Shown: positions 1 through 13,184 of the stretch, piece after piece
Position numbering within the stretch: the stretch's first letter is position 1
Layout of the letters: each line of letters starts with the position of its first letter
Assembly (NCBI RefSeq): GCF_000737315.1
Contig: NZ_JMCB01000006.1
Coordinates: 186,001 to 250,000 of the forward strand
Origin: Hyalangium minutum
GTDB taxonomy: Bacteria; Myxococcota; Myxococcia; Myxococcales; Myxococcaceae
Reading direction: 5' to 3'
Length of the DNA stretch: 64,000 nt
Translations under genes and position numbers: made by a program
The notes under the pieces: generated by a model
The model's database searches: none
Told to the model about the DNA's origin: nothing
The model's input: only the letters and a program-made list of their open reading frames with translations

Positions 1-3000
1 GAGCGCCTGCAGGTGCGCCAGTCCGATGAGGGACAGCGGCCCGGCCTGCTCATCCGTCGCCCCGGCGCTCGCCAGCTCCAGCCCCTTCTCGTACGCGGCC
101 TTCGCCTCGATGTGCCGGCCCGCCACGAACTCCACATCCCCCAGGTACGCGTAGGACAGACACAGCCCATGGGTGGTGCCCTGCTGCCGCGCCAGCCCCA
201 GCGCATGCACCAGCAGGTGCCGCGCCCGATCCAGCTGCCCCACATGGAACTGGTGCCGCCCCGCGTAGGCCGTGCCCATGCACAGGTACAGCCCCGTAAT
301 ATGGTGGGCCTCGGTGAAGGCGAGCAGCTCCGCGCTGCGCTGCACCCCCTCGTCCCAGCGGAACTCCGCCTCTGCGATGGCCGCGTAACAGAAGGTGGAA
401 GCCGCCATCCGCACCGGGTTGCCCAGCCTCAAGGCAATGCGCGCCGCCGACGCCGCGTACTCCCGGGCCCGCTTGAACTCGCCGCCATATGCCAGCCCCA
501 ACGCGAGCATCCCCTCGGCGTGCGTCTGCTCCACATACTCCCCCGCCTCCGCCGACTGCTGCGCCACCTCCGTGAGCATGGAGATGGAGGGCCCGAACCG
601 CCCCCACCCCGACAGCGCTCTCCCCATGATGCTCAACGGAGCATGGAGGTAGGAGCGCAGGTTCGGCTCCATGGCCGCCTCCAAGCACAGCTCGCTGTAC
701 TCCAGCGCCTTCGGGAAGTTGCCCTGCGCGTAGTACGCGCCCGCCCACGAGCTGTTGAGCGCCGCCTGCTGCTCCATCGTGGGGTCCTGCAGCAGCGCCT
801 GCCCCTGCTCCAGGTACCGGAGCATCTCCACCGCACTGCCCAGCAAGCACCCGATGCGCACCAGCCAATACAAGGAGCGCACCAGCACCTCATCCCGCTC
901 GGCCGAGGGAGGCTGAGCACTGGCCACGGTGAACGCCTTGCGCAGGTGCTGGTTGGCGCCGATGGGGTCCAACAACCGGTCCGCCTCCAGCCCTGCCTCC
1001 AGGTACGCACTGGCCGCCCGCACCGGCTGGCCCGCCTTCTCCCAGTGGTAGCCCTGCGTCCCCGGCGGGGCCTTGCGCTGCTGCAGCCGCTCGCCGATGC
1101 GCCGGTGGATGTCCTGCACGTTCTCCAGCCGCCCATCCGCCGCCAGCCGCTCGCGCAGCGTGTCATGCGCGAAGGTGCACCGGTCCCCCGCCACCACCAG
1201 CAGCCGCGCCTCCTCCGCCTCGGTGATGGCGGTGTGCACCTCTAGAGGAGAGAACAGCCCCAGCGCCTCCAGGTCCGACAGCCGGAACCGCCGGTCGAAG
1301 AGCGCGGCCACCCGCAGGACCTTCAGCACCCGCTCGTCCAGCCGCTCCAGCGCGCGCCCCACCACCGTGGAGACGGAGTCCGGAGGCCGGTACTCCCCAC
1401 TCAACCGGTCTGACAACCGGACACGCCCATCCGCCTCCCGGCTGAGGTAGTTCCCCAGCTGCAAGTCTCGAATGATCTGCGCGGCGACCAGCGGGTTGCC
1501 ACTGGCCAGGAACGGCACGGCCTGGACCAGGGCCTTCACCACGGCCGGGCTGGCGCCCCCCGCAAGCTGCGCCAGGAGCTGGCCGTTCTCCAGAGAGCTG
1601 AGCGCATCCAGGGTGAGCATCTCCAGCTCGCCGGTCTGCGCCAGGCGCGGCGGCGGCCGGGTGGTCGCCAGCAGCAGCACACCGGGAGGAGGGGCGGCGC
1701 TGATCCGCGAGAGCACGGCCAGGGTGCCCTCGTCCGCCGAGTGCACATCCTCCAGCACCAGCACCATCGGCCGCGCGGTACCAACGGCGGTGAGCAGGTG
1801 CATCAGCGCCTTGCCCACCCGCTCCGGCCCGAGCCCCTGGACGAGCACGCCCTCGGTGTCGCGCTCGGCGCCCTCCGGCAGCAGGCGGCTCAGCTCCGGC
1901 ACCAGCCGCCGCAGCTCCTGGGCCTCGCCCGCGAGCGCCTGCCCCGCCAGATGGCGCACCCGGTGCCCAGGCTCGCTGCGGATGCCCAGCAGCACCTCCA
2001 CCAGCTGCCCCAGCGCCTCGCGCAGCGGAGAGCACGGCACCAGCTCGCCCAGCTGCCGGCAGCGGCCGTACGTCACCAGCACCCGGGCGCTCACCTCGGG
2101 CGAGAGCAGCACCTCGGAGATGAGGCGGCTCTTCCCAATGCCGGCCTCGCCCACCACCATGAGCGCGCGGCCCTGGCGATCTCCCACCGAGTCCACCGCC
2201 TCGCGCAGCAGGGCCACCTCGCGAGCGCGGCCGACGAACGGCGCATTGTCCGAGGAGACCATCTCCGGAGGCAGGGGAGGCGGCGCCCAGTCGCTGGTGT
2301 TGCCGTGGAGCAGCTCGAAGTAGAGCCCCTTCAGGCGGCTGGCCAGCTGGCTCGCGCCGCCAAACCGGTGCGCCACGTCCGGCGCCAGCAGGGAGCGCAC
2401 CAGCGCCGCCACCGGGGGAGGCACCAAGGGCGCCACCTGCTCCAGCGGCGTCATCTTCCCCGCCCGCTTGAGCGAGCCCAGCGCCGCGTACGAGGCGTTG
2501 GTGGGGAACGGCAGGATGCACGCGAGCATCTCGTACAGCAGCGTCCCCAGGGAGAAGAGGTCCGCCTTCTCGGAGAACTCGCCCGTGCCGAAGAAGCACT
2601 CGGGGGCCATGTAGGCCAGCGTCCCGGCCATGGGCCCCCCCTCGTGCGTCCGGAAGCCGCCGGACAGCCGGGCCAGGCCGAAGTCCAGCACCTTCACCTT
2701 CGGCTCCACGGGGTCCGTAATAATGATGTTGGCCGGCTTGAGGTCCAGGTGGAGGACCTTGGAGTCGTGGCAGTAGGCCAGCGCCTCGGCGATGCGGCGC
2801 GTCAGTTGCAGGGCCTCCAGCACTTCCAGCGAGCCGCGCTCCTGAAGGTAGTTCCCCAGCACCACCCCGTGCACCAGCTCCATCACCAGATAGAGCCGCC
2901 CATCCTCCAGGAAGCCGTAGCCGAGCACCTCCACCAGCGCGGGGTGCCGCAGCCGCGCCAGCGCCTCAATCTCGTTCTGCTGCCAGACGAGCTGCTGCGC

Positions 3001-3195
3001 GGTGATGTTGCGGGCGGAGTGCTTGCTGACCTTGATGGCGACCTGCCGCTGCTCCGGGCCGCGCGCGCGGTACACCACGCCGAAGCCGCCCGAGCTGAGC
3101 ACGTCCTCGATGACATACGCCCCCACCGGCGTCCCCGGTTCGAGCGTACGGGGGACACCCTTCACATCGGATTTCTCCGGCGAAGGCAGTGCCAT
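1..3195 (-). CDS. Ser/Thr protein kinase + AAA_16/STAND-type ATPase + TPR-like helical region (C-terminus runs off the window)
   Basis: Translated by hand from the ATG at 3195; sampled segments stay in one frame down to base 1 (absent from the ORF track, presumably because its stop lies outside the window). Kinase motifs SSGGFGVVY, VAIK, HLDLKPAN, DFG, GTLAYMAPE; then PFVGRARE, Walker A GEAGIGKS, Walker B LVLEDVH; Ala/Leu-rich helical repeats follow. Confidence 0.9.
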   Translation of the reverse strand, partial: MALPSPEKSDVKGVPRTLEPGTPVGAYVIEDVLSSGGFGVVYRARGPEQRQVAIKVSKHSARNITAQQLVWQQNEIEALARLRHPALVEVLGYGFLEDGRLYLVMELVHGVVLGNYLQERGSLEVLEALQLTRRIAEALAYCHDSKVLHLDLKPANIIITDPVEPKVKVLDFGLARLSGGFRTHEGGPMAGTLAYMAPECFFGTGEFSEKADLFSLGTLLYEMLACILPFPTNASYAALGSLKRAGKMTPLEQVAPLVPPPVAALVRSLLAPDVAHRFGGASQLASRLKGLYFELLHGNTSDWAPPPLPPEMVSSDNAPFVGRAREVALLREAVDSVGDRQGRALMVVGEAGIGKSRLISEVLLSPEVSARVLVTYGRCRQLGELVPCSPLREALGQLVEVLLGIRSEPGHRVRHLAGQALAGEAQELRRLVPELSRLLPEGAERDTEGVLVQGLGPERVGKALMHLLTAVGTARPMVLVLEDVHSADEGTLAVLSRISAAPPPGVLLLATTRPPPRLAQTGELEMLTLDALSSLENGQLLAQLAGGASPAVVKALVQAVPFLASGNPLVAAQIIRDLQLGNYLSREADGRVRLSDRLSGEYRPPDSVSTVVGRALERLDERVLKVLRVAALFDRRFRLSDLEALGLFSPLEVHTAITEAEEARLLVVAGDRCTFAHDTLRERLAADGRLENVQDIHRRIGERLQQRKAPPGTQGYHWEKAGQPVRAASAYLEAGLEADRLLDPIGANQHLRKAFTVASAQPPSAERDEVLVRSLYWLVRIGCLLGSAVEMLRYLEQGQALLQDPTMEQQAALNSSWAGAYYAQGNFPKALEYSELCLEAAMEPNLRSYLHAPLSIMGRALSGWGRFGPSISMLTEVAQQSAEAGEYVEQTHAEGMLALGLAYGGEFKRAREYAASAARIALRLGNPVRMAASTFCYAAIAEAEFRWDEGVQRSAELLAFTEAHHITGLYLCMGTAYAGRHQFHVGQLDRARHLLVHALGLARQQGTTHGLCLSYAYLGDVEFVAGRHIEAKAAYEKGLELASAGATDEQAGPLSLIGLAHLQAL

Positions 3196-3424: not shown

Positions 3425-4537
3425 TCAGTGCGCGGCGGCCAGGGACGGGATGCCCGCCAGCGCCGGAGGCCGTACGAAGTGGCCATACCTGCGGCTCGCG
3501 GCGTACCAGGCCACGTGTCCGTTCACGTTGTAGAGCAGCGTGTCGACGAACCCGAGCATGTGGCGGTCCTCCGGGAAGGACTCCCGGAGCTTGAGCGCGA
3601 TATAGGTGATGTCCGCGGCCAGGGAGTTGAGCCGGTCGAGCAGCGACTTGAAGCGGCGCAGCAAGGCCTCGCGGTCCTGCCCCCGGTCGAGCAGCAGCAC
3701 GTTGTCCAGCTCGCCGCACGCCAGCTCCTTGGCCAGCGAGAACACATCATTGACGAGGATGATGTGCCGGCAGGTGTTGGTGAGCAGCAGCTTCACGGGG
3801 TGCATCTCGCGGTGCTCGCGGCTCAGGCGGATGCGCTGGATGGCGAGGAACGCCTCGACTGACTGCACATAGGTGATGGTCTGCTCCCGGTTGTGCATGT
3901 ACGTGGACACCGTGGGCATGTACCCGGTCTCCGTATGCGCGCCATGCTCCCAGGCCACCGCGTCGAAGTAGTTCGCCATGCTGGCGATGAACCAGGCCAG
4001 CGGCATGTCCGTCTCCAGGCCCAGCTCGCGGATGTCCCGCAGCGCCTCGCAGAACGACTCGAGCAGCGGGAACTCGGAGGCCGGAGGGCTCAGCGCGCTC
4101 GGCACCTCGCCGGTGAGCATGCTCATGAAGAGCCCGAACGTCTTCTGGAGCTGGCTGTAGGGCAGGTATTGCGCGCCCGCGCGCAGGTCAATCATGTTGT
4201 CCAGCGCGTCATCCAGCGTGAAGAAGAACGCCTGCAGGTAGATGAACCACTTGGTGCGGTGGACGGGCAGCTGCGGCAGCGTGCACGCCGCCAGCGCCGC
4301 CAGCTGCGTCTGGCCGAACTTGTGGAAGTACGGCTCGCCCTCTCGAATGAGTCCCTTCCGCAGCGCCCAGGTGATGCACTCCTGCTCCGCTCGGGCGACA
4401 TCCGCGGGCGAAGACACGGGGTGCGGCCACCCATGGCCGGGCGCATTCAAGAGGTGCAGGTGCCCCTCCAGGCGCACCTGCGCGACGTTTCCGAGGTCAA
4501 ACTCAACAGCCAGCGGGGAGTGCTTGTCGAGAGGCAT
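3425..4537 (-). CDS. Class I terpene synthase/cyclase (single domain, about 370 aa)
   Basis: DDxxD motif (TLDDALD), NSE motif (NDVFSLAKE), C-terminal WxxxxxRY (WYAASRRY). GGAGG RBS lies 9 nt before the ATG at 4537; the 5281 start in the ORF track is a spurious extension. Confidence 0.92.
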   Translation of the reverse strand: MPLDKHSPLAVEFDLGNVAQVRLEGHLHLLNAPGHGWPHPVSSPADVARAEQECITWALRKGLIREGEPYFHKFGQTQLAALAACTLPQLPVHRTKWFIYLQAFFFTLDDALDNMIDLRAGAQYLPYSQLQKTFGLFMSMLTGEVPSALSPPASEFPLLESFCEALRDIRELGLETDMPLAWFIASMANYFDAVAWEHGAHTETGYMPTVSTYMHNREQTITYVQSVEAFLAIQRIRLSREHREMHPVKLLLTNTCRHIILVNDVFSLAKELACGELDNVLLLDRGQDREALLRRFKSLLDRLNSLAADITYIALKLRESFPEDRHMLGFVDTLLYNVNGHVAWYAASRRYGHFVRPPALAGIPSLAAAH

Positions 4538-4723
4538 GGCGGGGATCCTCCAACACAGACATCGTACGTCAGTGACACGGCAGGCTTCCCCTCGGAAACA
4601 CGCGAGACATGAATCACAGTCACCGTGAAAAAGGCCGTTCATCCTCTCTCTTTTCCAAGGGCGCGCGGTGTCCGTGATTACCCAGCGCGTGAACCCGGCC
4701 CTCCCGCCTAGCCTGTGCGGGAC

Positions 4724-5323
4724 ATGGATCCCACCCCGCTCGTCGTCGTCGCCGTCATCGCCATCCTCGGTGTCGCGATCTTCTCCATCGTCAACCAGGG
4801 CCAGAAGCGAAAGGCCCTCTGGGAGATGCTGGCCGGACAGCTCGGGCTGGAGCACCGCGGGAGCGTGCTGCTGGGCGAATACCAGGGCGTGCCAGTGCGC
4901 ATTGCCGTGGAGACGCGGCGCAACCCCCACGGCTATGACCAGCTCTGCGTGGTGCGAGCGGACATCCCGGGTGCACTGCCTGAGGGCTTCGTTGCCGCAC
5001 CGCGCCGTTGGACGTCGGGACTGGACCGGATGCTGGCCGACAACACCTTCCAGGCCTCGGACCCCGCGCTCCAGGAGTGCTACGTCTTCCAGAGCGACCA
5101 GCCCCAGCAAGGCCAGGCGCTCATCTATGAGCCCGAGGCGCAGAAGGCCCTGCTGGAGCTCTACAGCCCCAAGCGCGTGGGCTTCGTGGAGAAGAACCGG
5201 GTCCACGTCGCGTACACGGGGCTGGTGGAGGACGCCGAGGAGCTCCGCGCGGCCCTGCTGGACGTGACGCAGACAGCGCACACCCTGGCCCGGGCCCAGG
5301 CGCGCCTCGCGCAGGGCGCCTAG
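4724..5323 (+). CDS. Membrane-anchored hypothetical protein
   Basis: N-terminal hydrophobic helix (LVVVAVIAILGVAIFSIV) followed by a soluble domain; typical GC3 codon bias; divergent from the terpene synthase. Confidence 0.75.
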   Translation: MDPTPLVVVAVIAILGVAIFSIVNQGQKRKALWEMLAGQLGLEHRGSVLLGEYQGVPVRIAVETRRNPHGYDQLCVVRADIPGALPEGFVAAPRRWTSGLDRMLADNTFQASDPALQECYVFQSDQPQQGQALIYEPEAQKALLELYSPKRVGFVEKNRVHVAYTGLVEDAEELRAALLDVTQTAHTLARAQARLAQGA

Positions 5324-5332
5324 CCCCGGCGC

Positions 5333-5710
5333 TCAGCCCCGCCCGGGGCTCAGCAGCCGCTCCAGGCACGCCAGCAGCTCGTCCACGTGTGCGCCCTTGT
5401 GGAACACGGCATCCACCTGCACGGGCGGCGCGGCGCGGCCCTGGCCGGAGACGAGGACGATCTTCGCCGCGGGCACCCGGCGGCGCACCAACGGAATCAG
5501 CTCCCGCGCGTCCCCATCCCCGAGGCTCCAGTCCATCAGGACGGCGTCGTAGCGCGGCTGTCCCTCCAGGAGCTGGCCCGCCTGGGGCAGCGACTCCGCG
5601 ACGGCCACGGTGAAGCCCGCCTCCTCCAGCACTGCGGAGAGCGTCAGCCAGTTGGCTGGGTCGTCCTCCACCAGCAGCACGCTCCGGTGCGGTGTCCCCG
5701 AGTTCTCCAT
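5333..5710 (-). CDS. Single-domain response regulator (receiver)
   Basis: VLLVEDD, phosphoacceptor VLMD, VSG, conserved Lys (FHKG). Confidence 0.9.
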   Translation of the reverse strand: MENSGTPHRSVLLVEDDPANWLTLSAVLEEAGFTVAVAESLPQAGQLLEGQPRYDAVLMDWSLGDGDARELIPLVRRRVPAAKIVLVSGQGRAAPPVQVDAVFHKGAHVDELLACLERLLSPGRG

Positions 5711-5734
5711 CGGTGCCCCTCCCTCGGTGCCCGC

Positions 5735-6454
5735 TCAGGTACTGCGGGCGGCGCCGGCCTCGTCGGCGATGGGGAAGGAGACCTGGACCCGCGTGCCCAC
5801 CGGCTCGGCGGGCTTCAGCTCCACCCACGCGCGGCAGCGCAGCGCCAGCCGCTGGACGATGCACAGCCCCAGGCCCGCGTGCCCCGCCTTCGTCGTCATG
5901 AAGGGCTCGAACACCCGCGTCCGGAGCTCCTCGGGGACGCCCGATCCGGTGTCGCTCACCTCCAAGACAACGCGGCCCTCGTCCGTCCGCAGCGTGCGCA
6001 TCGAGAGCAGGCCTCCGCGCGGCATCGCCTCCACGGCGTTCTCCACCAGGCAGCGGATGAGCAGCGTGAGGCGCGCCGTGTCCGCCTGCACCAGGGCCCG
6101 CTCCTGCCAGGTGCTCTCCACCCGCACGAGGGAGGGCACCCCCGCACGCGCCAGCGCCTCTTGCGCCACGTCACACAGCCGCAGCCGGGTGCTGTCCTCG
6201 TCGGGCACCGGCAGGCCCCGTGTGGACAGCACCTCCTCGGCGGAGACCAGCTCGCGGTCAATGAGCTGGAAGAACGTCTCCATCCGCGGATCCGTCTTCC
6301 ACAGCTCCGTCTTCTGCGCCTGGCGCATCAGGTAATAGGAAGCGTTGCGGATGCTGGAGAAGCGGTTGCGCAGGTCATGCCGCAGCACGGCCGTGACCAC
6401 CTCGGCCACTGCCGCACGCTCGCGGGCCTCCAGCCCAGGGGTTTGCTCGTCCAT
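5735..6454 (-). CDS. Cytoplasmic histidine kinase with no input domain
   Basis: H-box LRHDLRN at about residue 24, N-box LVENAVEAM, G1 DTGSGV, FEPF, G2 GHAGLGL; start MDEQ at 6454. Confidence 0.88.
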   Translation of the reverse strand: MDEQTPGLEARERAAVAEVVTAVLRHDLRNRFSSIRNASYYLMRQAQKTELWKTDPRMETFFQLIDRELVSAEEVLSTRGLPVPDEDSTRLRLCDVAQEALARAGVPSLVRVESTWQERALVQADTARLTLLIRCLVENAVEAMPRGGLLSMRTLRTDEGRVVLEVSDTGSGVPEELRTRVFEPFMTTKAGHAGLGLCIVQRLALRCRAWVELKPAEPVGTRVQVSFPIADEAGAARST

Positions 6455-6455
6455 G

Positions 6456-7199
6456 TCAGCTCCTCGCCAGGGCCCGGCCACGGGTCCGTGCAATCGTCTG
6501 TGCCAGCTCCCGGATGGAGATGGGCTTGCGCATGCAGGCGACATCCCCCAGTGCTGCCACCTGCCGCATCATCTCGGGGACTTCGTGCCCGGACACCGCG
6601 ATGAACGCCACGGGCTGACCCGAACCCCTCAGCCGCTCCACCACCTGCGCGCCCGTCATCCCCGGCATCACCAAGTCCACCACGCAGACATCGATCTTCC
6701 CGGTGCGCATGCGCTCCAGCGCCTCGTCCCCGTCGTACGCCGCCTGCGCCCGGATGCCGCAGAGGCGTAGCCCCTCCACCGTCGCCTCCGCCACGTCCTG
6801 CGAGTCATCCACCACCAACACCTCGGGTACGAGTGCCGCGCGGCGCAGCGTCCTCAACAGGTGCGCCACGTCGAACGGCTTGTGGAGCACGGTGAAGACG
6901 CCCTCGGCCAGCGCGTCCTCCACCAGGTTCTCCTGGGCGAACGCCGTCATCAGCACCACGGGCAACCCGGGCTGCTCGCGCCGCAGGTGGCGGGCCAGCT
7001 CCACGCCGTGCAGCCCCGGCATGCGGATGTCCGCCAGCACCACGTCCACCGGCCGCTGGCGCACCACCCGCAGCGCCTCCTCGCCCGTGGGGGCCTCCAC
7101 CACCTCGTGGCCCTCCAGCTCGAGGTTGGCGGCGAGCGTCACCCGCATCGACTCCTCGTCATCCACCACCAGGACGCGCGCCGGGCTCACGGGGCTCAC
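6456..7199 (-). CDS. Response regulator made of two tandem receiver domains
   Basis: Two complete REC motif sets (VLVVDD..LADIRMPG..MTA..KP and VLVVDD..VVDLVMPG..VSG..KP). The GTG start abuts the upstream stop codon. Confidence 0.9.
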   Translation of the reverse strand: MSPVSPARVLVVDDEESMRVTLAANLELEGHEVVEAPTGEEALRVVRQRPVDVVLADIRMPGLHGVELARHLRREQPGLPVVLMTAFAQENLVEDALAEGVFTVLHKPFDVAHLLRTLRRAALVPEVLVVDDSQDVAEATVEGLRLCGIRAQAAYDGDEALERMRTGKIDVCVVDLVMPGMTGAQVVERLRGSGQPVAFIAVSGHEVPEMMRQVAALGDVACMRKPISIRELAQTIARTRGRALARS

Positions 7200-8615
7200 C
7201 TAGGCCGCTCGCGCCTGGGCCGGCGGCAACTGGATGACGAACTCACTGCCCCGGCCCTGCTCGCTCGACACCTGGAGCGTGCCGCCGTGGCGCTGCACCC
7301 GCGTGGCGACGATGGCCAGCCCCAGCCCCGTGCCCTCCTTCTTGGTGGTGAACAGCGGCTCGAAGATGCGCGGCAGCACGTCCGGCGGAATCCCGCCGCC
7401 ATCATCCACCACGCGCACGCGCAGCGGCTCGGCGCCGCCGCCGTCGGCCCGCACCACCACCTCGCCCGGGCGCCCCGCGGGAATGGCCTCCACCGCGTTC
7501 TGCACCAGGTTGATGAGCACCTGCCGGAACTGATCTCGGTCCAACAGCGGCACGGGCAGCGCCTCGGGCACCTGGTTGAGCACCCGCACCTGCTCGCGCG
7601 CGGGCACCACCCCCACCGCCTCCTCCACCAGCGGCCGCAGCGGACAGGGCTGGAGGCTCACCGGGCGCTCGCGCGCGAAGTCCAACAGGTCCGAGATGAT
7701 GCGCGCGCAGCTGTTCAGCTCCCGGTCCATCAACGCCAGGAACTGGGGCACGCGCGCGTCGTTCGCCAGCGGCTCCGGCCGTGCCAGGCGCTTGCAGAGG
7801 TACGCATGCGCGTTGCGCACGGCGGCCAGCGGGTTGCGCAGCTCATGGCCCACCCCGGCGGCCAGCTGGCCCACCGCCGCCAGCTTCTCCACCCGGATGA
7901 GGTGCTCCTGGGCACCCTTCAGCTCCGTCAGCGCCCGGTTCAGCTCCGCCGTCTTCTGGTGCTCGCGCTCGGAGGCCAGCTCCGCCACCGCGCGGCGCTC
8001 GGCCATCTCCCGCATCTCGCGCACCGCCTCGCGGATGGAGCGCAGCAGCACCAGGTCCAGGAACACCAGCCACACCGCGTGTTCCAGCAGCCGCCACCAC
8101 TCCGGGCTCGGCGTGCCGTAGATGGACTCCGGCCACAGCATGCCCCGCACCCAGTGGTCCAACACCACCACGCCGCTCGCGGTGAGCAGCACCGGCCACT
8201 CCCGGTAGAAGGCCAGGAACGTCAGCGAGCCCAGCGTGTGGAAGTGCGTCTCGATGCGCCCGCCCGTCAGGTGGATGAGCAGCGCGGACCAGAGCACCTG
8301 GCAGATGGCCACCGTGTGCCGGGTGAGCGAAGTACCGGGCCGCCGCCACACCTGGACAATGGTGACTGCGCTCAGCACCCCGCCGAGCACCACCGCCACC
8401 CAGATGTGCGAGTCAGCCGCCCGCGCCTTGCCTGCCCAGCCGTACGGCGAGAACACGGCCGCGAGGACGAGGGCCGCCAGCCACTGCGCGCCCATCAGCC
8501 AGGCGAAGAGCCGATCCACCCTCCGCCACACTTCCTGCTGGTGCTGAGAGAAGAGCCGGGCGACGCGCTCCTCGAGCTGCTCCGTCGCGCCGGGCTCCAC
8601 CACCGCCGGCTTCAT
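7200..8615 (-). CDS. Membrane sensor histidine kinase (multi-pass input domain + HisKA + HATPase_c)
   Basis: About six hydrophobic segments including LIHLTGGRIETHFH; coiled coil; H-box GHELRNPL, NLVQNAVEA, DDGGGI, FEPLFTTK, GTGLGL. Confidence 0.92.
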   Translation of the reverse strand: MKPAVVEPGATEQLEERVARLFSQHQQEVWRRVDRLFAWLMGAQWLAALVLAAVFSPYGWAGKARAADSHIWVAVVLGGVLSAVTIVQVWRRPGTSLTRHTVAICQVLWSALLIHLTGGRIETHFHTLGSLTFLAFYREWPVLLTASGVVVLDHWVRGMLWPESIYGTPSPEWWRLLEHAVWLVFLDLVLLRSIREAVREMREMAERRAVAELASEREHQKTAELNRALTELKGAQEHLIRVEKLAAVGQLAAGVGHELRNPLAAVRNAHAYLCKRLARPEPLANDARVPQFLALMDRELNSCARIISDLLDFARERPVSLQPCPLRPLVEEAVGVVPAREQVRVLNQVPEALPVPLLDRDQFRQVLINLVQNAVEAIPAGRPGEVVVRADGGGAEPLRVRVVDDGGGIPPDVLPRIFEPLFTTKKEGTGLGLAIVATRVQRHGGTLQVSSEQGRGSEFVIQLPPAQARAA

Positions 8616-8646
8616 GGCGGCAAGCCCTGTGCTGCGCTCCACGCCA

Positions 8647-9078
8647 TCACATCACCCGTTTCCAGGCCCCAAGCTCTGTCGTCAGCGAGCTCATCACCCG
8701 CTTGAGCCGCGCGGACTCCGCCGCGCGCTGCACAATCTCAATCAGGCGCTGCGGCTCGTACGGCTTGATGAGCAGGTAGTAGAGCCCCTGCATCTCGTAC
8801 TTGTCTCGCTTCTCCAGGTACTCGGCATGGCCGGTGACGAGCACCCCGGACATGTGCGGCTGGCGCGCCATCGCCTCGCGCAACAGCTGGATTCCGTTGC
8901 GACCCGGCATGTTGAAGTCCGTGCACAGCACGTCCACGCTGTTGCGCTCCATCAGCCGAAGCGCCTCGGTCGCATCCGGCGCCGTCAACACGCGGAAGTC
9001 CTCGGACAGGACCGCCGCCGCGGTGATGAGCACCGGGTGCTCATCATCAACCACCAGGACCGTGAGCCTCTCGTTCAT
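8647..9078 (-). CDS. Response regulator (receiver with short C-terminal helix)
   Basis: VLVVDDE, LCTDFNMPG, VTG, IKPY; start MNERL at 9078. Confidence 0.9.
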   Translation of the reverse strand: MNERLTVLVVDDEHPVLITAAAVLSEDFRVLTAPDATEALRLMERNSVDVLCTDFNMPGRNGIQLLREAMARQPHMSGVLVTGHAEYLEKRDKYEMQGLYYLLIKPYEPQRLIEIVQRAAESARLKRVMSSLTTELGAWKRVM

Positions 9079-9359
9079 GACTTCCAAGCGCCTCGTGGTA
9101 GCCCCCAACCTCGGGGTGGGTACAAGTAGGACAAGCGCCGGAGAACCCGGCACTGCCCGAGACGTTGTTGAAACACCGTACCCTGGGTGGATCGACACCG
9201 CCCCTCGCAGGCAGGGCTCAGGTTCGGCAGCGGACAAAGTCCGGCCCCAGGCTTTCCCAGAAGTCCTTTTTTTCACGCTATGACTTTCGGAAGTGAACGC
9301 TTGCGGGGCCTGCACGCTGATAGGTTGCGGCGGATCGCAGCCTCAGGGGGGCTCCCTTC

Positions 9360-10478
9360 ATGGAAGTTGAGGTCCGCTTCGCCACCACGGAAGACGAGCG
9401 TGCCGCCGTCTACCGTCTGCGCTACGCGACCTATGTGGAGGAGATGCACGTCTACACCCGGCAGGCCGATCACGAGCGCCACTGGTTCCTGGACTCGGAG
9501 GACACCGCGGCCCACTTGATGTACGCAAAGGTGGAAGAGGACGTGGTGGGGACGCTCCGGGTGCAGCTGGAGGCAGAGGGAGCCCTGCCCGAGCCCACGG
9601 CCTCGCGCTTCGCGCTGGAGCGCTTCCGGCCGCTGGTGCGCCCGGAGCAGATCTGCGTGGTGGGCCGCTTCATGGTGCGCCAGGACATGCGCGGCACGGC
9701 GGTGCCCTACCGGCTCATTCAAGAGAGCATCCGCTTCCAGCTCGCCCAGGGCCAGGAGCTGGCCTTCTGCGACTGCCAGCCGCACTTGCTCAACCTTTAT
9801 ATGTCGCTGGGGTTCCGGCCCTACCTGGGCACGTATGACCACCCGGAGTTCGGGGTGATGGTGCCGCTGGTGCTGGTGCTGCGGGACCGAGAGCACCTGG
9901 AGTGGGTGGGCTCGCCGCTGACGCCGCTGCTGCCCACGGACGCGCCGCCCTCGGAGGTGCCGGAGCGGGTGGCGCCGCTGCTGGCGAAGGCGCGCGGGGT
10001 GATGAGCCAGGAGCTGAGCGATCCGGACTCGTACTGGCGGGAGGTGCACGGGCTGATGGGCACGGCGCGCCCGGCCGTGTTCGCCGGTCTGTCCGAGCAG
10101 GAGCTGCAGGCGGTGCTGGCCAGCAGCCACGTCATCCAGTGCGCTCCGGGGGACTACCTCATCCGCAAGGGGCAGGTGGCGCGCACCGTGTTCGTGGTGC
10201 TCGCCGGCTCGCTGGAGGTGCGCGACGGAGAGCGCGCGGTAGCCACCGCGTCCGAGGGCGAGGTGCTCGGGGAGGTGGCCTTCCTGCTGTCCAGCTCTCG
10301 CATCAGCGACGTGTGCGCCACGGGCAATGGCGCGCGAGTGCTGTGCCTGAGCGAGAAGTCGCTGCGCGCGCTGATCGACTCCAGCTCGCGCGCGGCGGCG
10401 CTGCTGCTGCTCAACCTGTCGCGAGCGCTGGCGCACAAGCTGGTCCAGCGCGCGGACAACCCCAAGTCGGGCGGTTAG
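9360..10478 (+). CDS. GNAT-fold N-acyltransferase (FeeM/LuxI-like) fused to a C-terminal cyclic-nucleotide-binding domain
   Basis: N-terminal AVYRLRYATYVEE, VVGTLR, VVGRFMVRQDMRG, LYMSLGF; C-terminal GDYLIRKG..VFVVLAGSLEV..GEVLGEVAFLL...R. Confidence 0.82.
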   Translation: MEVEVRFATTEDERAAVYRLRYATYVEEMHVYTRQADHERHWFLDSEDTAAHLMYAKVEEDVVGTLRVQLEAEGALPEPTASRFALERFRPLVRPEQICVVGRFMVRQDMRGTAVPYRLIQESIRFQLAQGQELAFCDCQPHLLNLYMSLGFRPYLGTYDHPEFGVMVPLVLVLRDREHLEWVGSPLTPLLPTDAPPSEVPERVAPLLAKARGVMSQELSDPDSYWREVHGLMGTARPAVFAGLSEQELQAVLASSHVIQCAPGDYLIRKGQVARTVFVVLAGSLEVRDGERAVATASEGEVLGEVAFLLSSSRISDVCATGNGARVLCLSEKSLRALIDSSSRAAALLLLNLSRALAHKLVQRADNPKSGG

Positions 10479-10502: not shown

Positions 10503-10835
10503 TCAGCGGTGCGCGTGCTGAGTCTCCGTGTAGTGCTGGAGCTGGTGGCGGACCGCCTCGAAGGCGTCATTCACCGCCTGATACGGGTCCTCGTGCTCAC
10601 GGCGCTCGGCGTGCTCGCGCCCGGCGAAGAGCTCCTTGCCCGGCACGTGCAGATCGACGCGCACGTGGAAGCGGTTGCCCTGGCGCTGGTGCTTGTGCGG
10701 CTGCTCCACCACGACGTGGCAGCCGACGATGCGATCGCAGAACTGCTCCAGCTTCTCCGCCTCACCCCGGATGTACTCGGCCATGGCCTCGCTCGTGTCC
10801 ATCCCCCGGAAGGTGATCTGCAGCGGTCGGTTCAT
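10503..10835 (-). CDS. HPF/RaiA family ribosome-associated protein
   Basis: LQITFRGMDTS start, CHVVVEQPH, VRVDLHVPG, DPYQAVNDAFEAVRHQL. Confidence 0.88.
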   Translation of the reverse strand: MNRPLQITFRGMDTSEAMAEYIRGEAEKLEQFCDRIVGCHVVVEQPHKHQRQGNRFHVRVDLHVPGKELFAGREHAERREHEDPYQAVNDAFEAVRHQLQHYTETQHAHR

Positions 10836-10881
10836 CTGTCGCCTCGGTAAAGGCCCCGTGGGCCGGTTCACCCTCTCTCCA

Positions 10882-10899
10882 TTGCATTCCCAGGGCCAG
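10882..10899 (-). promoter_or_regulatory. Putative sigma54 (-24/-12) promoter of the HPF-like gene
   Basis: Minus strand reads CTGGCCCTGGGAATGCAA: GG and GC are separated by exactly 10 nt, about 50 nt upstream of the ATG. Confidence 0.4.
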
Positions 10900-11115
10900 C
10901 ACGCTCCCAGGCGATTCAAGGGGTTACGCGCCCCCCGGACGCAGGCTTTGCGGCAAATCGCCTCACGGCCGCAGCGGCTGCGGGGCGTTCTGACACTCCT
11001 GCACGGACAGAGGGGCGCGCCTCACCGCCCGTCCACCGGCCGAGCGGCCCGCGAGGGGTTGCGCCAGCGTGCCTACCTTGTCCATCGGAGCCCTCCTGGC
11101 TCCCGAGGAGGCGGA

Positions 11116-12030: not shown

Positions 12031-12105
12031 CGTAGGGGGAATTGCATGTCTCCAGGCAAGCCGCTTCAATCCGCACCGGGATGCGTAAGGAGCCATGACC
12101 CGCCC

Positions 12106-12633
12106 GTGAACACAGCCCGTATCGAAGTCCTGGGGAACGCCATCCTCTCCGCGATGGAGGCGATGAAGATCGCTCCCGAGCGCGCTCAGCGCATCTTCGC
12201 GGAGCACGGCATCACCCAGCCGGAGAAAGACGCGTGGTACCCCGTGGACAGCGTGCTGCGGGCGTACCGGGACATCTTGAAACAGATCGGCCCGAACACC
12301 ATGAAGGCGGTGGGGCGCAACATCCCCAAGAACGCGGAGTTCCCCCGAGGCCTCACCACGGTGGAGCAAGCGCTGAAGTCCCTGAACACGGCCTACCGGA
12401 TGAACCACCGGGGTCCGGGCGGCATCGGCGGCTACCACTACGAGTCCACGAGCGCGAGGGCGGGGCAGGTCACCTGCGACAACCCGTATCCGTGCCCGGT
12501 GGACGAGGGGCTGGTGGAGGCCATCGCCGAGCGCTTCAAGCCCAAGGACGCCTTCTTCATCCGCCTGCATCATGATCCGGCGACGTGCCGGGGCCGTGGG
12601 GACGCCGCCTGCGTCTACCACGTGGCGTGGTAA
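12106..12633 (+). CDS. Stand-alone V4R/4VR-like ligand-binding protein, paralog 1
   Basis: WYP, IGPNT, HRG, CDNPYPC, DEG, CRxxGxxxCxY motifs shared with the next gene. Start codon uncertain (GTG 12106 chosen). Confidence 0.75.
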   Translation: MNTARIEVLGNAILSAMEAMKIAPERAQRIFAEHGITQPEKDAWYPVDSVLRAYRDILKQIGPNTMKAVGRNIPKNAEFPRGLTTVEQALKSLNTAYRMNHRGPGGIGGYHYESTSARAGQVTCDNPYPCPVDEGLVEAIAERFKPKDAFFIRLHHDPATCRGRGDAACVYHVAW

Positions 12634-12644
12634 GGGAACGGCGG

Positions 12645-13184
12645 ATGCCGCAACGCTTTCAGTTGGAGAAGTTCGAGGTGCAGGGCCAGGCCATCATGTC
12701 GGTGGTCGCGGCCATGGCCCTCATCCAACACCGAGCGCTGAAGATCCTCGCGGATCGCGGCATCACCCCGCTGGAGAAGGACCGCTGGTATCCGCTGGAT
12801 CGGCTCATGGAGGTCTTCAAGACCATCAGCACGGAGATTGGTCCCAACACGGTGAAGGCGGTGGGGCGGAAGATTCCGGAGAACGCGCAGTTCCCTCCGA
12901 ACCTCAAGACCATCGAGGAAGGCTTCCGCTCCATCGACGTGGCCTACCAGATGTGCCACCGAGGCCCAGGGAACGTGGGGGGCTACCACTACGCGCCGAC
13001 GGGCAGCCGCACGGCTCGGATGGTCTGCGACAACCCGTATCCGTGCGGCCTGGACGAGGGGCTGCTGGAGGCCATCGGAGAGCGCTTCCGGCCCATCGAC
13101 TCGCTCTGGGTGCGGGTGGAGCACCCACCCGGCCCCTGCCGGAAAAAGGGTGCGGCCTCCTGCACCTACAACCTGTCCTGGTAG
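12645..13184 (+). CDS. Stand-alone V4R/4VR-like ligand-binding protein, paralog 2
   Basis: About half of the aligned residues are identical to paralog 1 by manual alignment; AAGGGA RBS; the 3' end overlaps the convergent MFS gene by 19 nt. Confidence 0.8.
   Translation: MPQRFQLEKFEVQGQAIMSVVAAMALIQHRALKILADRGITPLEKDRWYPLDRLMEVFKTISTEIGPNTVKAVGRKIPENAQFPPNLKTIEEGFRSIDVAYQMCHRGPGNVGGYHYAPTGSRTARMVCDNPYPCGLDEGLLEAIGERFRPIDSLWVRVEHPPGPCRKKGAASCTYNLSW

Follow-up and report, generated by a model that had tools for sequence, protein, structure and literature searches.

The 64-kb stretch of Hyalangium minutum DNA analyzed here (hereafter the window; ~69% G+C) carries a gene for a two-domain protein in which an N-terminal GNAT acyltransferase domain of the FeeM type is joined to a C-terminal cyclic nucleotide-binding (CNB) domain (Table 1). 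Our searches showed that this FeeM-CNB architecture is a large, widespread and near-obligate fusion family, and that the fusion gene behaves as a self-contained unit without a conserved operon partner. The architecture and the intact phosphate-binding cassette make an N-acyl synthase gated by cyclic nucleotide monophosphates (cNMPs) a reasonable reading and, judging from sequence, a structural model and analogy, we see an even chance that the protein is a self-contained N-acyltransferase of this kind, making an N-acyl amide or a lyso-aminolipid. An initial annotation of this DNA had proposed such a synthase and, in addition, had regarded the adjacent membrane histidine kinase as the receptor of its product; the first part stands as a plausible reading, whereas the second does not.

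Domain architecture and predicted fold

Two Pfam families cover the N-terminal half of the protein, each above its gathering score: FeeM (PF21926; aa 16-171, E 2.4e-11, 44.1 bits vs. a gathering score of 27) and Acetyltransf_5 (PF13444; E 9e-10). The C-terminal half matches cNMP_binding (PF00027; aa 260-341, E 4e-13, 49.6 bits vs. 27.5). More than 120 full-length homologues share this two-domain layout, which is far beyond chance; an antisense open reading frame (ORF; 9273..10436, -) was rejected as a high-GC artifact, since homology favors the forward strand. The protein stops directly after the C-helix of the CNB domain and therefore has no DNA-binding domain.

The full-length fusion was modeled with AlphaFold2 from a 49-sequence alignment, giving a predicted local distance difference test (pLDDT) score of 91.7 and a predicted template modeling (pTM) score of 0.89, and the latter value in a two-domain protein points to a defined inter-domain arrangement. 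In the model, the linker between the domains forms helices at 200-209 and 222-233, with pLDDT values of 76-91 in this stretch, and the N-terminal domain modeled alone reached a pLDDT of 96.0. Foldseek comparison of the latter with the PDB returned FeeM (2G0B) as the top match (E 7e-10, TMq 0.75, TMt 0.80), followed by the acyl-homoserine lactone (AHL) synthases BjaI, RpaI, MesI, LasI and TofI, which match over the whole 195 aa, whereas generic small GNATs span less of the query. BjaI was also the top PDB sequence-profile match (E 2e-5), and the RLRYxxY motif of the fusion protein aligns with RLRHDIF of BjaI. For the CNB half, the PDB sequence matches comprised PKG, PKA-R, SthK, CNG/HCN channels, CRP-type regulators and the mycobacterial acetyltransferase MtPat, and Foldseek on the C-terminal part likewise returned CNB domains. 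These results confirmed the combination of a FeeM/LuxI-like GNAT and a C-terminal cNMP domain that had been read from the sequence at the outset and, by Pfam threshold and predicted fold, the GNAT domain is assigned to the branch that holds FeeM, the N-acyl amino acid synthases (NAS) and OlsB.

Comparison with the characterized members of this branch revealed both likenesses and differences. All 32 family N-domains examined match PF21926, 2G0B is the top structural match over the whole domain and, as in FeeM/NAS, the enzyme would stand alone, needing no dedicated carrier protein nearby; however, sequence identity to these enzymes is just 16-19%, and the CNB domain present here is known in none of the characterized NAS enzymes. 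Similarly, PF13444, the family of the OlsB-type N-acyltransferases of ornithine, glutamine and glycine lipid synthesis, matches 32 of the 32 N-domains, but OlsB proteins have no CNB domain, and the OlsB equivalog models NF052554 (25.2 bits, cut-off 350) and NF052555 (17.1 bits, cut-off 320) gave no full-length match.

Residue conservation was counted over 235 family members. The RLRYxxY and GE..R residues lie where the initial annotation had placed them and are widely kept (R19 in 196/235, R21 in 209/235, Y22 in 221/235 and Y25 in 206/235; G304 in 233/235, E305 in 221/235, A307 in 201/235 and R314 in 223/235). In the Hyalangium minutum protein the cassette, which reads G304-E305-V-A-F-L-L-S-S-S-R314-I-S-D-V, is intact and retains the Gly-Glu pair and the Arg of functional CNB domains. 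Directly behind the cassette Arg, 100 of the 235 members have Thr, 51 have Ser and 42 have Ile, a mixture that makes the nucleotide preference not readable from sequence. Within the enzyme domain, the D-C-Q-P-H motif (C139 in 224/235, P141 in 220/235, H142 in 214/235) is accompanied by R111 (233/235), D176 (234/235), G151 (234/235), Y147 (228/235), R153 (225/235) and R103 (221/235). The most conserved polar residues of this domain are thus D-C-Q-P-H with R103, R111, Y147, R153 and D176, which we take as candidate active-site residues.

Distribution and genomic neighborhoods of the fusion family

A full-length search of 5.8 billion proteins yielded 124 matches, nearly all of ~370 aa and with FeeM and cNMP_binding together; the nearest named homologues are from Hyalangium (79-80% identity). 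When the N-domain was searched against 1.84 billion cluster representatives (50% identity), 1,052 representatives matched at E<=1e-10, and a local CNB hidden Markov model (HMM) detected a CNB domain in 122 of the 145 best of them. The other 23 are 96-334 aa long, below the ~370-aa length of the fusion, and most of them look like fragments. Fusion loci were then collected from one genome per species with an 11-sequence alignment as query. Among the best 80 of 163 loci, the hosts include Myxococcota, Alphaproteobacteria (with the cultured Dongia deserti), Gammaproteobacteria, Acidobacteriota, Actinomycetota, Chloroflexota, Verrucomicrobiota, Spirochaetales, Binatia, Rhodothermales and others. 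In one fetched locus (L012, a long-read metagenome-assembled genome, MAG; 7974-9455, +), the FeeM-CNB frame is split: the N-terminal part continues in one frame and the CNB part forms a separate ORF (8755-9111), which is probably an assembly indel and not a pseudogene.

A universal operon partner was sought by BLAST clustering of the ORFs within 5 kb of the fusion gene in 86 loci (the window and the fetched loci), and no family occurred in more than 12 of the 86. In 79 distant loci, the 207 ORFs lying no more than 600 nt from the fusion gene were also assigned to Pfam in two scans, which returned 97 and 90 families, none of them dominant; the ORF sets behind these counts came from a GC-frame gene caller and may hold spurious frames, which yield no Pfam hits. 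Against this diverse background, a small number of neighbors recur, and they hint at cNMP signaling and at lipid or amine chemistry under cNMP control.

Class III cyclases lie within 8 kb of the fusion gene in 13/85 loci and immediately beside it in six (Pfam-verified). Three of these loci carry the same neighbor of ~1,460 aa, composed of a double zinc ribbon, a Ser/Thr kinase, AAA_16, TPR and a C-terminal class III cyclase (L042, 9096-13466, -; L047, 9248-13660, +; L053, 6233-10615, -). As the three MAGs are assigned to different phyla and their FeeM-CNB proteins are 59-70% mutually identical, the pair may be a two-gene module that moves horizontally, or else a product of mis-binning. The other adjacent cyclases have hydrolase-cyclase and SAM-cyclase-AAA_16 architectures. 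In addition, cNMP-patatin lipases flank the fusion gene on both sides in L002 (8239-9966 and 11112-14336, +), where a cyclase-AAA_16-TPR gene follows 3.3 kb downstream, and another lies downstream of it in L091 (1426-3645, -); among these lipases, one is a fusion with a major facilitator superfamily domain and another contains an NTE P-loop domain. The genes of L002 appear to form a compact cNMP-lipid cluster.

Neighbors with amine or lipid chemistry form the second group. In five Acidobacteriota/Bryobacterales loci (L006, L009, L021, L039 and L043, all +), a group II pyridoxal phosphate-dependent amino-acid decarboxylase is translationally coupled downstream, its start overlapping or abutting the fusion stop on the same strand (L006, 11105-12565; L009, 11104-12573). 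Its top matches, all sub-threshold, are diaminobutyrate and aspartate decarboxylases, and a DUF3667 protein often comes next. Relatives also have genes for a PlsC-type acyltransferase (PF01553) and a Rieske/KshA_C oxygenase close to the response regulator and the fusion gene (L012, 5380-7167, -; L001, 3603-5291, -). The two genes directly adjoin the response regulator in L012 and lie just beyond the phosphorelay in Hyalangium versicolor (L010); in L011, whose locus breaks off at this point, only the Rieske gene is seen beyond the phosphorelay. A PlsC-type gene is also present within 3 kb of the fusion gene in the distant loci L024, L070 and L074. OlsB and OlsA act in a two-step lipid scheme (PMC11631085), and the PlsC-type gene of the relatives may be an OlsA-like partner in an aminolipid pathway. 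P450 genes were observed near the fusion gene in a few loci. None of these recurrent neighbors, nor the Rieske gene, occurs in the window.

Proposed function and alternative explanations

In the mechanism that we propose, the CNB domain would bind a cyclic nucleotide, either cAMP or cGMP, upon which its N-terminal helices and the linker (aa 187-236) would move and alter the FeeM-type active site, either in its geometry or in its accessibility. Activation would come about through release of autoinhibition, a direction taken by analogy with the mycobacterial cAMP-regulated Pat, whose GNAT is allosterically activated by cAMP via relief of autoinhibition (PMC8556138). With housekeeping acyl-acyl carrier protein (ACP) or acyl-CoA as the fatty acyl donor, the GNAT domain would then acylate an amino acid or small amine at its amino group. 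As FeeM/NAS and OlsB-type enzymes make N-acyl amides or lyso-aminolipids (PMC11631085), a compound of this kind is the expected product, and it could serve as a signal, a surfactant or a membrane-lipid precursor.

A wider proposal is that the Hyalangium minutum protein is the founding example of a large, phylum-spanning class of second-messenger effectors, in which the synthesis of N-acyl amino acids, N-acyl amines or lyso-aminolipids is turned on by cAMP or cGMP itself; this proposal is tentative, and we give it somewhat less than an even chance. If it holds, bacterial cNMP signaling would be tied to lipid signals or membrane remodeling without a transcription factor, and the neighboring cyclases, cNMP-patatin lipases, decarboxylases and PlsC-type enzymes would be lineage-specific suppliers of signal, acyl chains or amine. 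To our knowledge, few direct enzyme-level targets of bacterial cAMP or cGMP are known beyond CRP-type regulators, and the mycobacterial Pat is the main cNMP-gated GNAT; the family would add a second, chemically distinct class. N-acyl amides and aminolipids have poorly understood roles in bacteria as signals, surfactants and membrane components, and a link between second messengers and their output would offer a way into the question of when bacteria produce these lipids, and for what purpose.

Several observations weigh against a cNMP-gated N-acyl synthase. A full-text literature search found no paper on the FeeM-CNB fusion, and the family is apparently unstudied so far and amenable to experiment. 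As for the proposed catalytic Glu of FeeM, the position preceding R103 is variable (Ser 65, Thr 54, Glu 53 and Gly 34 of 235). In the cassette, Ile follows the Arg in place of the usual Ser, Thr or Ala. At most loci the neighbors are unrelated housekeeping genes, and five of the six cyclase-adjacent loci belong to one subclade with 59-84% mutual identity, so that the adjacency enrichment (Fisher p 0.008) overstates independence and was downgraded. The window itself holds no cyclase detectable with a cyclase HMM, no second CNB protein and no PlsC-type gene. Finally, no dedicated ACP gene was found in the window and 90 loci by a jackhmmer search of six-frame ORFs seeded with E. coli AcpP.

Among the alternatives, a cNMP-regulated protein lysine acyltransferase, a functional Pat analogue with reversed domain order that would modify target proteins instead of making a small molecule, is unlikely. 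Its appeal is that the sole characterized CNB-GNAT proteins, MtPat (Rv0998) and MsPat (PDB 4AVA-4AVC), are cAMP-activated protein lysine acetyltransferases (PMC8556138), which also join a CNB and a GNAT domain in one polypeptide and have detectably similar CNB domains. Acetyltransf_1 matches 23 of the 32 N-domains, weakly, and HP0935 and the Streptomyces lividans PAT appear lower in the fold list. However, the enzyme domain is N-terminal in the Hyalangium minutum protein, as the initial annotation had already remarked, and its GNAT belongs to the FeeM/LuxI/OlsB branch instead of the Pat branch; the substrate class probably differs too. The NCBIfam Pat model NF058543 (ActPatMycb56), which has a cut-off of 460 bits, scored 36.5 bits and aligned to aa 240-322 in the CNB domain only, with no full-length match, and the match to PDB 4AVA is likewise confined to that domain. 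The top families and folds of the N-domain are FeeM, the OlsB type and AHL synthases, which stand for long-chain acylation of small amines.

It is improbable to a similar degree that the CNB domain senses neither cAMP nor cGMP and instead binds another ligand, or none, with a role in dimerization or in a different kind of allosteric control, for which FNR, CooA and KCNH-type CNB homology domains are models. Many bacterial CNB-fold domains do bind other ligands, the Ile after the cassette Arg characterizes the clade of the Hyalangium minutum protein, and most loci, this window included, have no nearby cyclase. On the other hand, 94-99% of the 235 members retain the Gly-Glu and Arg residues that non-nucleotide CNB homologues have lost, and cyclases or other CNB proteins neighbor the fusion gene in ~20 loci.

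A poorer prospect still is the signal synthase-receptor locus, in which an N-acyl signal made by the fusion enzyme would be sensed by the adjacent membrane histidine kinase. The fusion gene and the phosphorelay are divergent neighbors in Hyalangium minutum, Hyalangium versicolor and a Myxococcaceae MAG, and the polytopic membrane sensor domain of the kinase could in principle bind a lipid. Both relatives (80% and 77% identity, respectively) have the response regulator, kinase, double-REC, HATPase-only and REC genes all upstream and the gene for hibernation-promoting factor (HPF) downstream. However, HPF and, in Hyalangium versicolor, the DUF72 gene downstream are equally conserved in the close relatives, so that the phosphorelay beside the gene reflects plain synteny. 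In L012, a 77%-identity relative, the response regulator (81%) and HPF (73%) are still present but the kinase block is missing altogether, the response regulator being followed directly by the Rieske/KshA_C and PlsC-type genes. On the short contig of a 61%-identity relative (L090), the response regulator and HPF still flank the gene, and at 49% identity the neighbor is a cNMP-NTE-patatin lipase. Across relatives of at least 61% identity, the response regulator is the sole upstream neighbor kept in all, and HPF is the constant downstream one. The stable flanks in this lineage are therefore the small response regulator and HPF, and the kinase block comes and goes.

The distant loci led to the same view. 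Apart from Hyalangium minutum, just two relatives, Hyalangium versicolor and a Myxococcaceae MAG, have the sensor domain beside a fusion gene, and the N-terminal membrane domain of the kinase has no homologue in the ~80 distant fusion loci. Of ~81 distant loci, 8 have a two-component gene of some kind no more than 5 kb away, which is the background level; among the ORFs within 600 nt, Response_reg appeared twice among 104 in one scan and did not rank in the top 25 families for the remaining 103. Conversely, homologues of the sensor domain number 2,194 (~50% identity); most are stand-alone ~235-aa proteins, and in three Myxococcales contexts (among L092-L096) they form a conserved trio with a ~215-aa protein upstream and a ~70-aa protein downstream, with no FeeM-CNB gene nearby. 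The initial annotation had itself named a non-conserved linkage to the phosphorelay as grounds for abandoning the locus model and, as the linkage fails in L012, in the distant loci and among the sensor-domain homologues, it does not extend beyond shallow synteny. The larger phosphorelay is a lineage-specific neighbor, its pairing with the fusion gene is a local accident of gene order and not a partnership, and the tempting synthase-receptor story is thereby removed for this locus.

A LuxI-type AHL synthase under cNMP control is highly improbable. The fold is shared with the LuxI-type AHL synthases, especially the CoA-dependent group of BjaI, RpaI and MesI, as is the RxRxxxF/Y N-terminal motif, and BjaI and other AHL synthases rank among the best profile and fold matches. 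However, the likeness to LuxI suggested at first holds for the FeeM family and fold and not for the LuxI signature: Autoind_synth (PF00765) has no match to the fusion protein at E<=0.01 and matches only one of the 32 N-domains, weakly (E 0.0027). In addition, the conserved Trp of the LuxI N-terminal S-adenosylmethionine-binding block is missing in the BjaI alignment, and no LuxR-type gene was found among the window neighbors scanned (1 to ~20.4 kb) or the recurrent neighbors elsewhere.

The least probable alternative is a Pycsar-like anti-phage effector, in which a cyclase would act on a CNB-domain effector: cNMP-patatin/NTE-like lipases and Pycsar CNB-TIR or CNB-transmembrane effectors likewise fuse a CNB sensor to an effector, the PADLOC PycTIR/PycC models match the CNB domain (E 1e-11 to 4e-13), PycC models match some neighboring cyclases, and a cyclase is adjacent in six loci, but the effector chemistry differs, the PADLOC matches are generic and no stronger than those of Pfam, the adjacent cyclases are large signaling proteins (kinase-AAA_16-TPR-cyclase, hydrolase-cyclase and SAM-cyclase-AAA_16), 85% of loci have no cyclase, and the Pycsar setting, a minimal PycC cyclase and its effector as a two-gene operon in a defense island, was not observed; the neighbors are housekeeping genes and, in relatives, the gene is syntenic.

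Promoter-like element, flanking genes and the rest of the window

Table 1. Positions in the window of the fusion gene, its domains and motifs, and the flanking features (+, forward strand; -, reverse strand;., no strand)
Feature	Position	Strand	Description	Basis
FeeM-like acyltransferase-cNMP-binding fusion gene	9360..10478 (incl. stop codon)	+	372 aa, ATG start	ORF list, Pfam, 124 homologues
N-terminal GNAT domain	9360..9917	+	aa 1-186, FeeM/LuxI fold	Pfam, Foldseek, PDB sequence profile
RLRYxxY motif (YRLRYATY)	9414..9434	+	aa 19-25, start of GNAT helix 1	Family conservation
D-C-Q-P-H motif	9771..9785	+	aa 138-142, strand 5 / helix 4 junction	Family conservation
Helical linker	9918..10067	+	aa 187-236, GNAT domain to N-terminal CNB helices	AlphaFold2 secondary structure
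CNB domain	10068..10457	+	aa 237-366, beta-barrel and C-terminal B and C helices	Pfam, PDB sequence, Foldseek
Phosphate-binding cassette GEVAFLLSSSRISDVCA	10269..10319	+	aa 304-320	Family conservation
Promoter-like element	9289..9326	+	Two invariant blocks, GGAAGTGAACGCT (9289-9301) and CTGATAGGTT (9317-9326), 34-71 nt 5' of ATG	Spacer alignment
Divergent intergenic region	9079..9359	.	281 nt	Sequence; conserved blocks with three relatives
Single-domain response regulator	8647..9078	-	143 aa, divergent	Pfam Response_reg; adjacent orthologues in L010, L011, L012, L090
Rest of phosphorelay	5333..8642	-		Pfam; present in L010 and L011, absent in L012
Membrane histidine kinase	7200-8642	-		Pfam
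Double-REC protein	6456-7199	-		Pfam
HATPase-only protein	5735-6544	-	Start uncertain	Pfam
REC protein	5333-5710	-		Pfam
Hibernation-promoting factor (Ribosomal_S30AE)	10503..10919	-	Convergent	Pfam; L001, L090, tblastn

The divergent spacer has the extent given to it in the initial annotation, and its alignment with three relatives (four sequences) revealed that the two blocks of the promoter-like element are invariant and at fixed spacing. The combined GGAAGTGAACGCT/CTGATAGGTT pattern occurs once in the window, vs. 0.06 occurrences expected. This element is probably the fusion gene's own promoter, and may be of the extracytoplasmic function sigma factor type (-35 GAAC / -10 CTGAT), which it resembles; it suggests transcriptional control of its own, apart from the phosphorelay. 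Scans around the fusion gene for sigma-70 promoters and for intrinsic terminators found none. More conserved spacer blocks were observed toward the response-regulator side, at ~9160-9224.

For the response regulator, the start was set at the ATG ending at 9078 (-), which matches the 143-aa orthologues; the true HPF start is probably downstream of the longest-ORF start. Within the phosphorelay, the kinase sensor domain comprises the N-terminal 240 aa (7923-8642, -), which are polytopic and have no Pfam match, and the HATPase_c-only protein shows no recognizable HisKA and a weak HPTransfase match. None of the phosphorelay proteins carries an output domain. In Hyalangium versicolor, an extra gene for a 211-aa protein with no Pfam match lies between the response regulator and the kinase, and it has no counterpart in the Hyalangium minutum window.

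At the beginning of the window, a gene for a PknK-like Ser/Thr kinase-AAA_16-TPR protein is cut by the window start (1-3195, -). Given its resemblance to the neighbors in L042, L047 and L053, it was considered as a cyclase source and rejected, as its PknK-like orthologues of ~1,190 aa have no cyclase domain. Next to it lies a family-2 terpene synthase gene (3425-5281, -), whose longest ORF is over-extended N-terminally, the Pfam domain occupying aa 351-530. Downstream of HPF, two tandem paralogues (12046-12633, +, and 12585-13184, +) encode proteins of 195 and 199 aa that are 48% identical and have no Pfam match, and both products contain a CDNPYPC...C...C motif.

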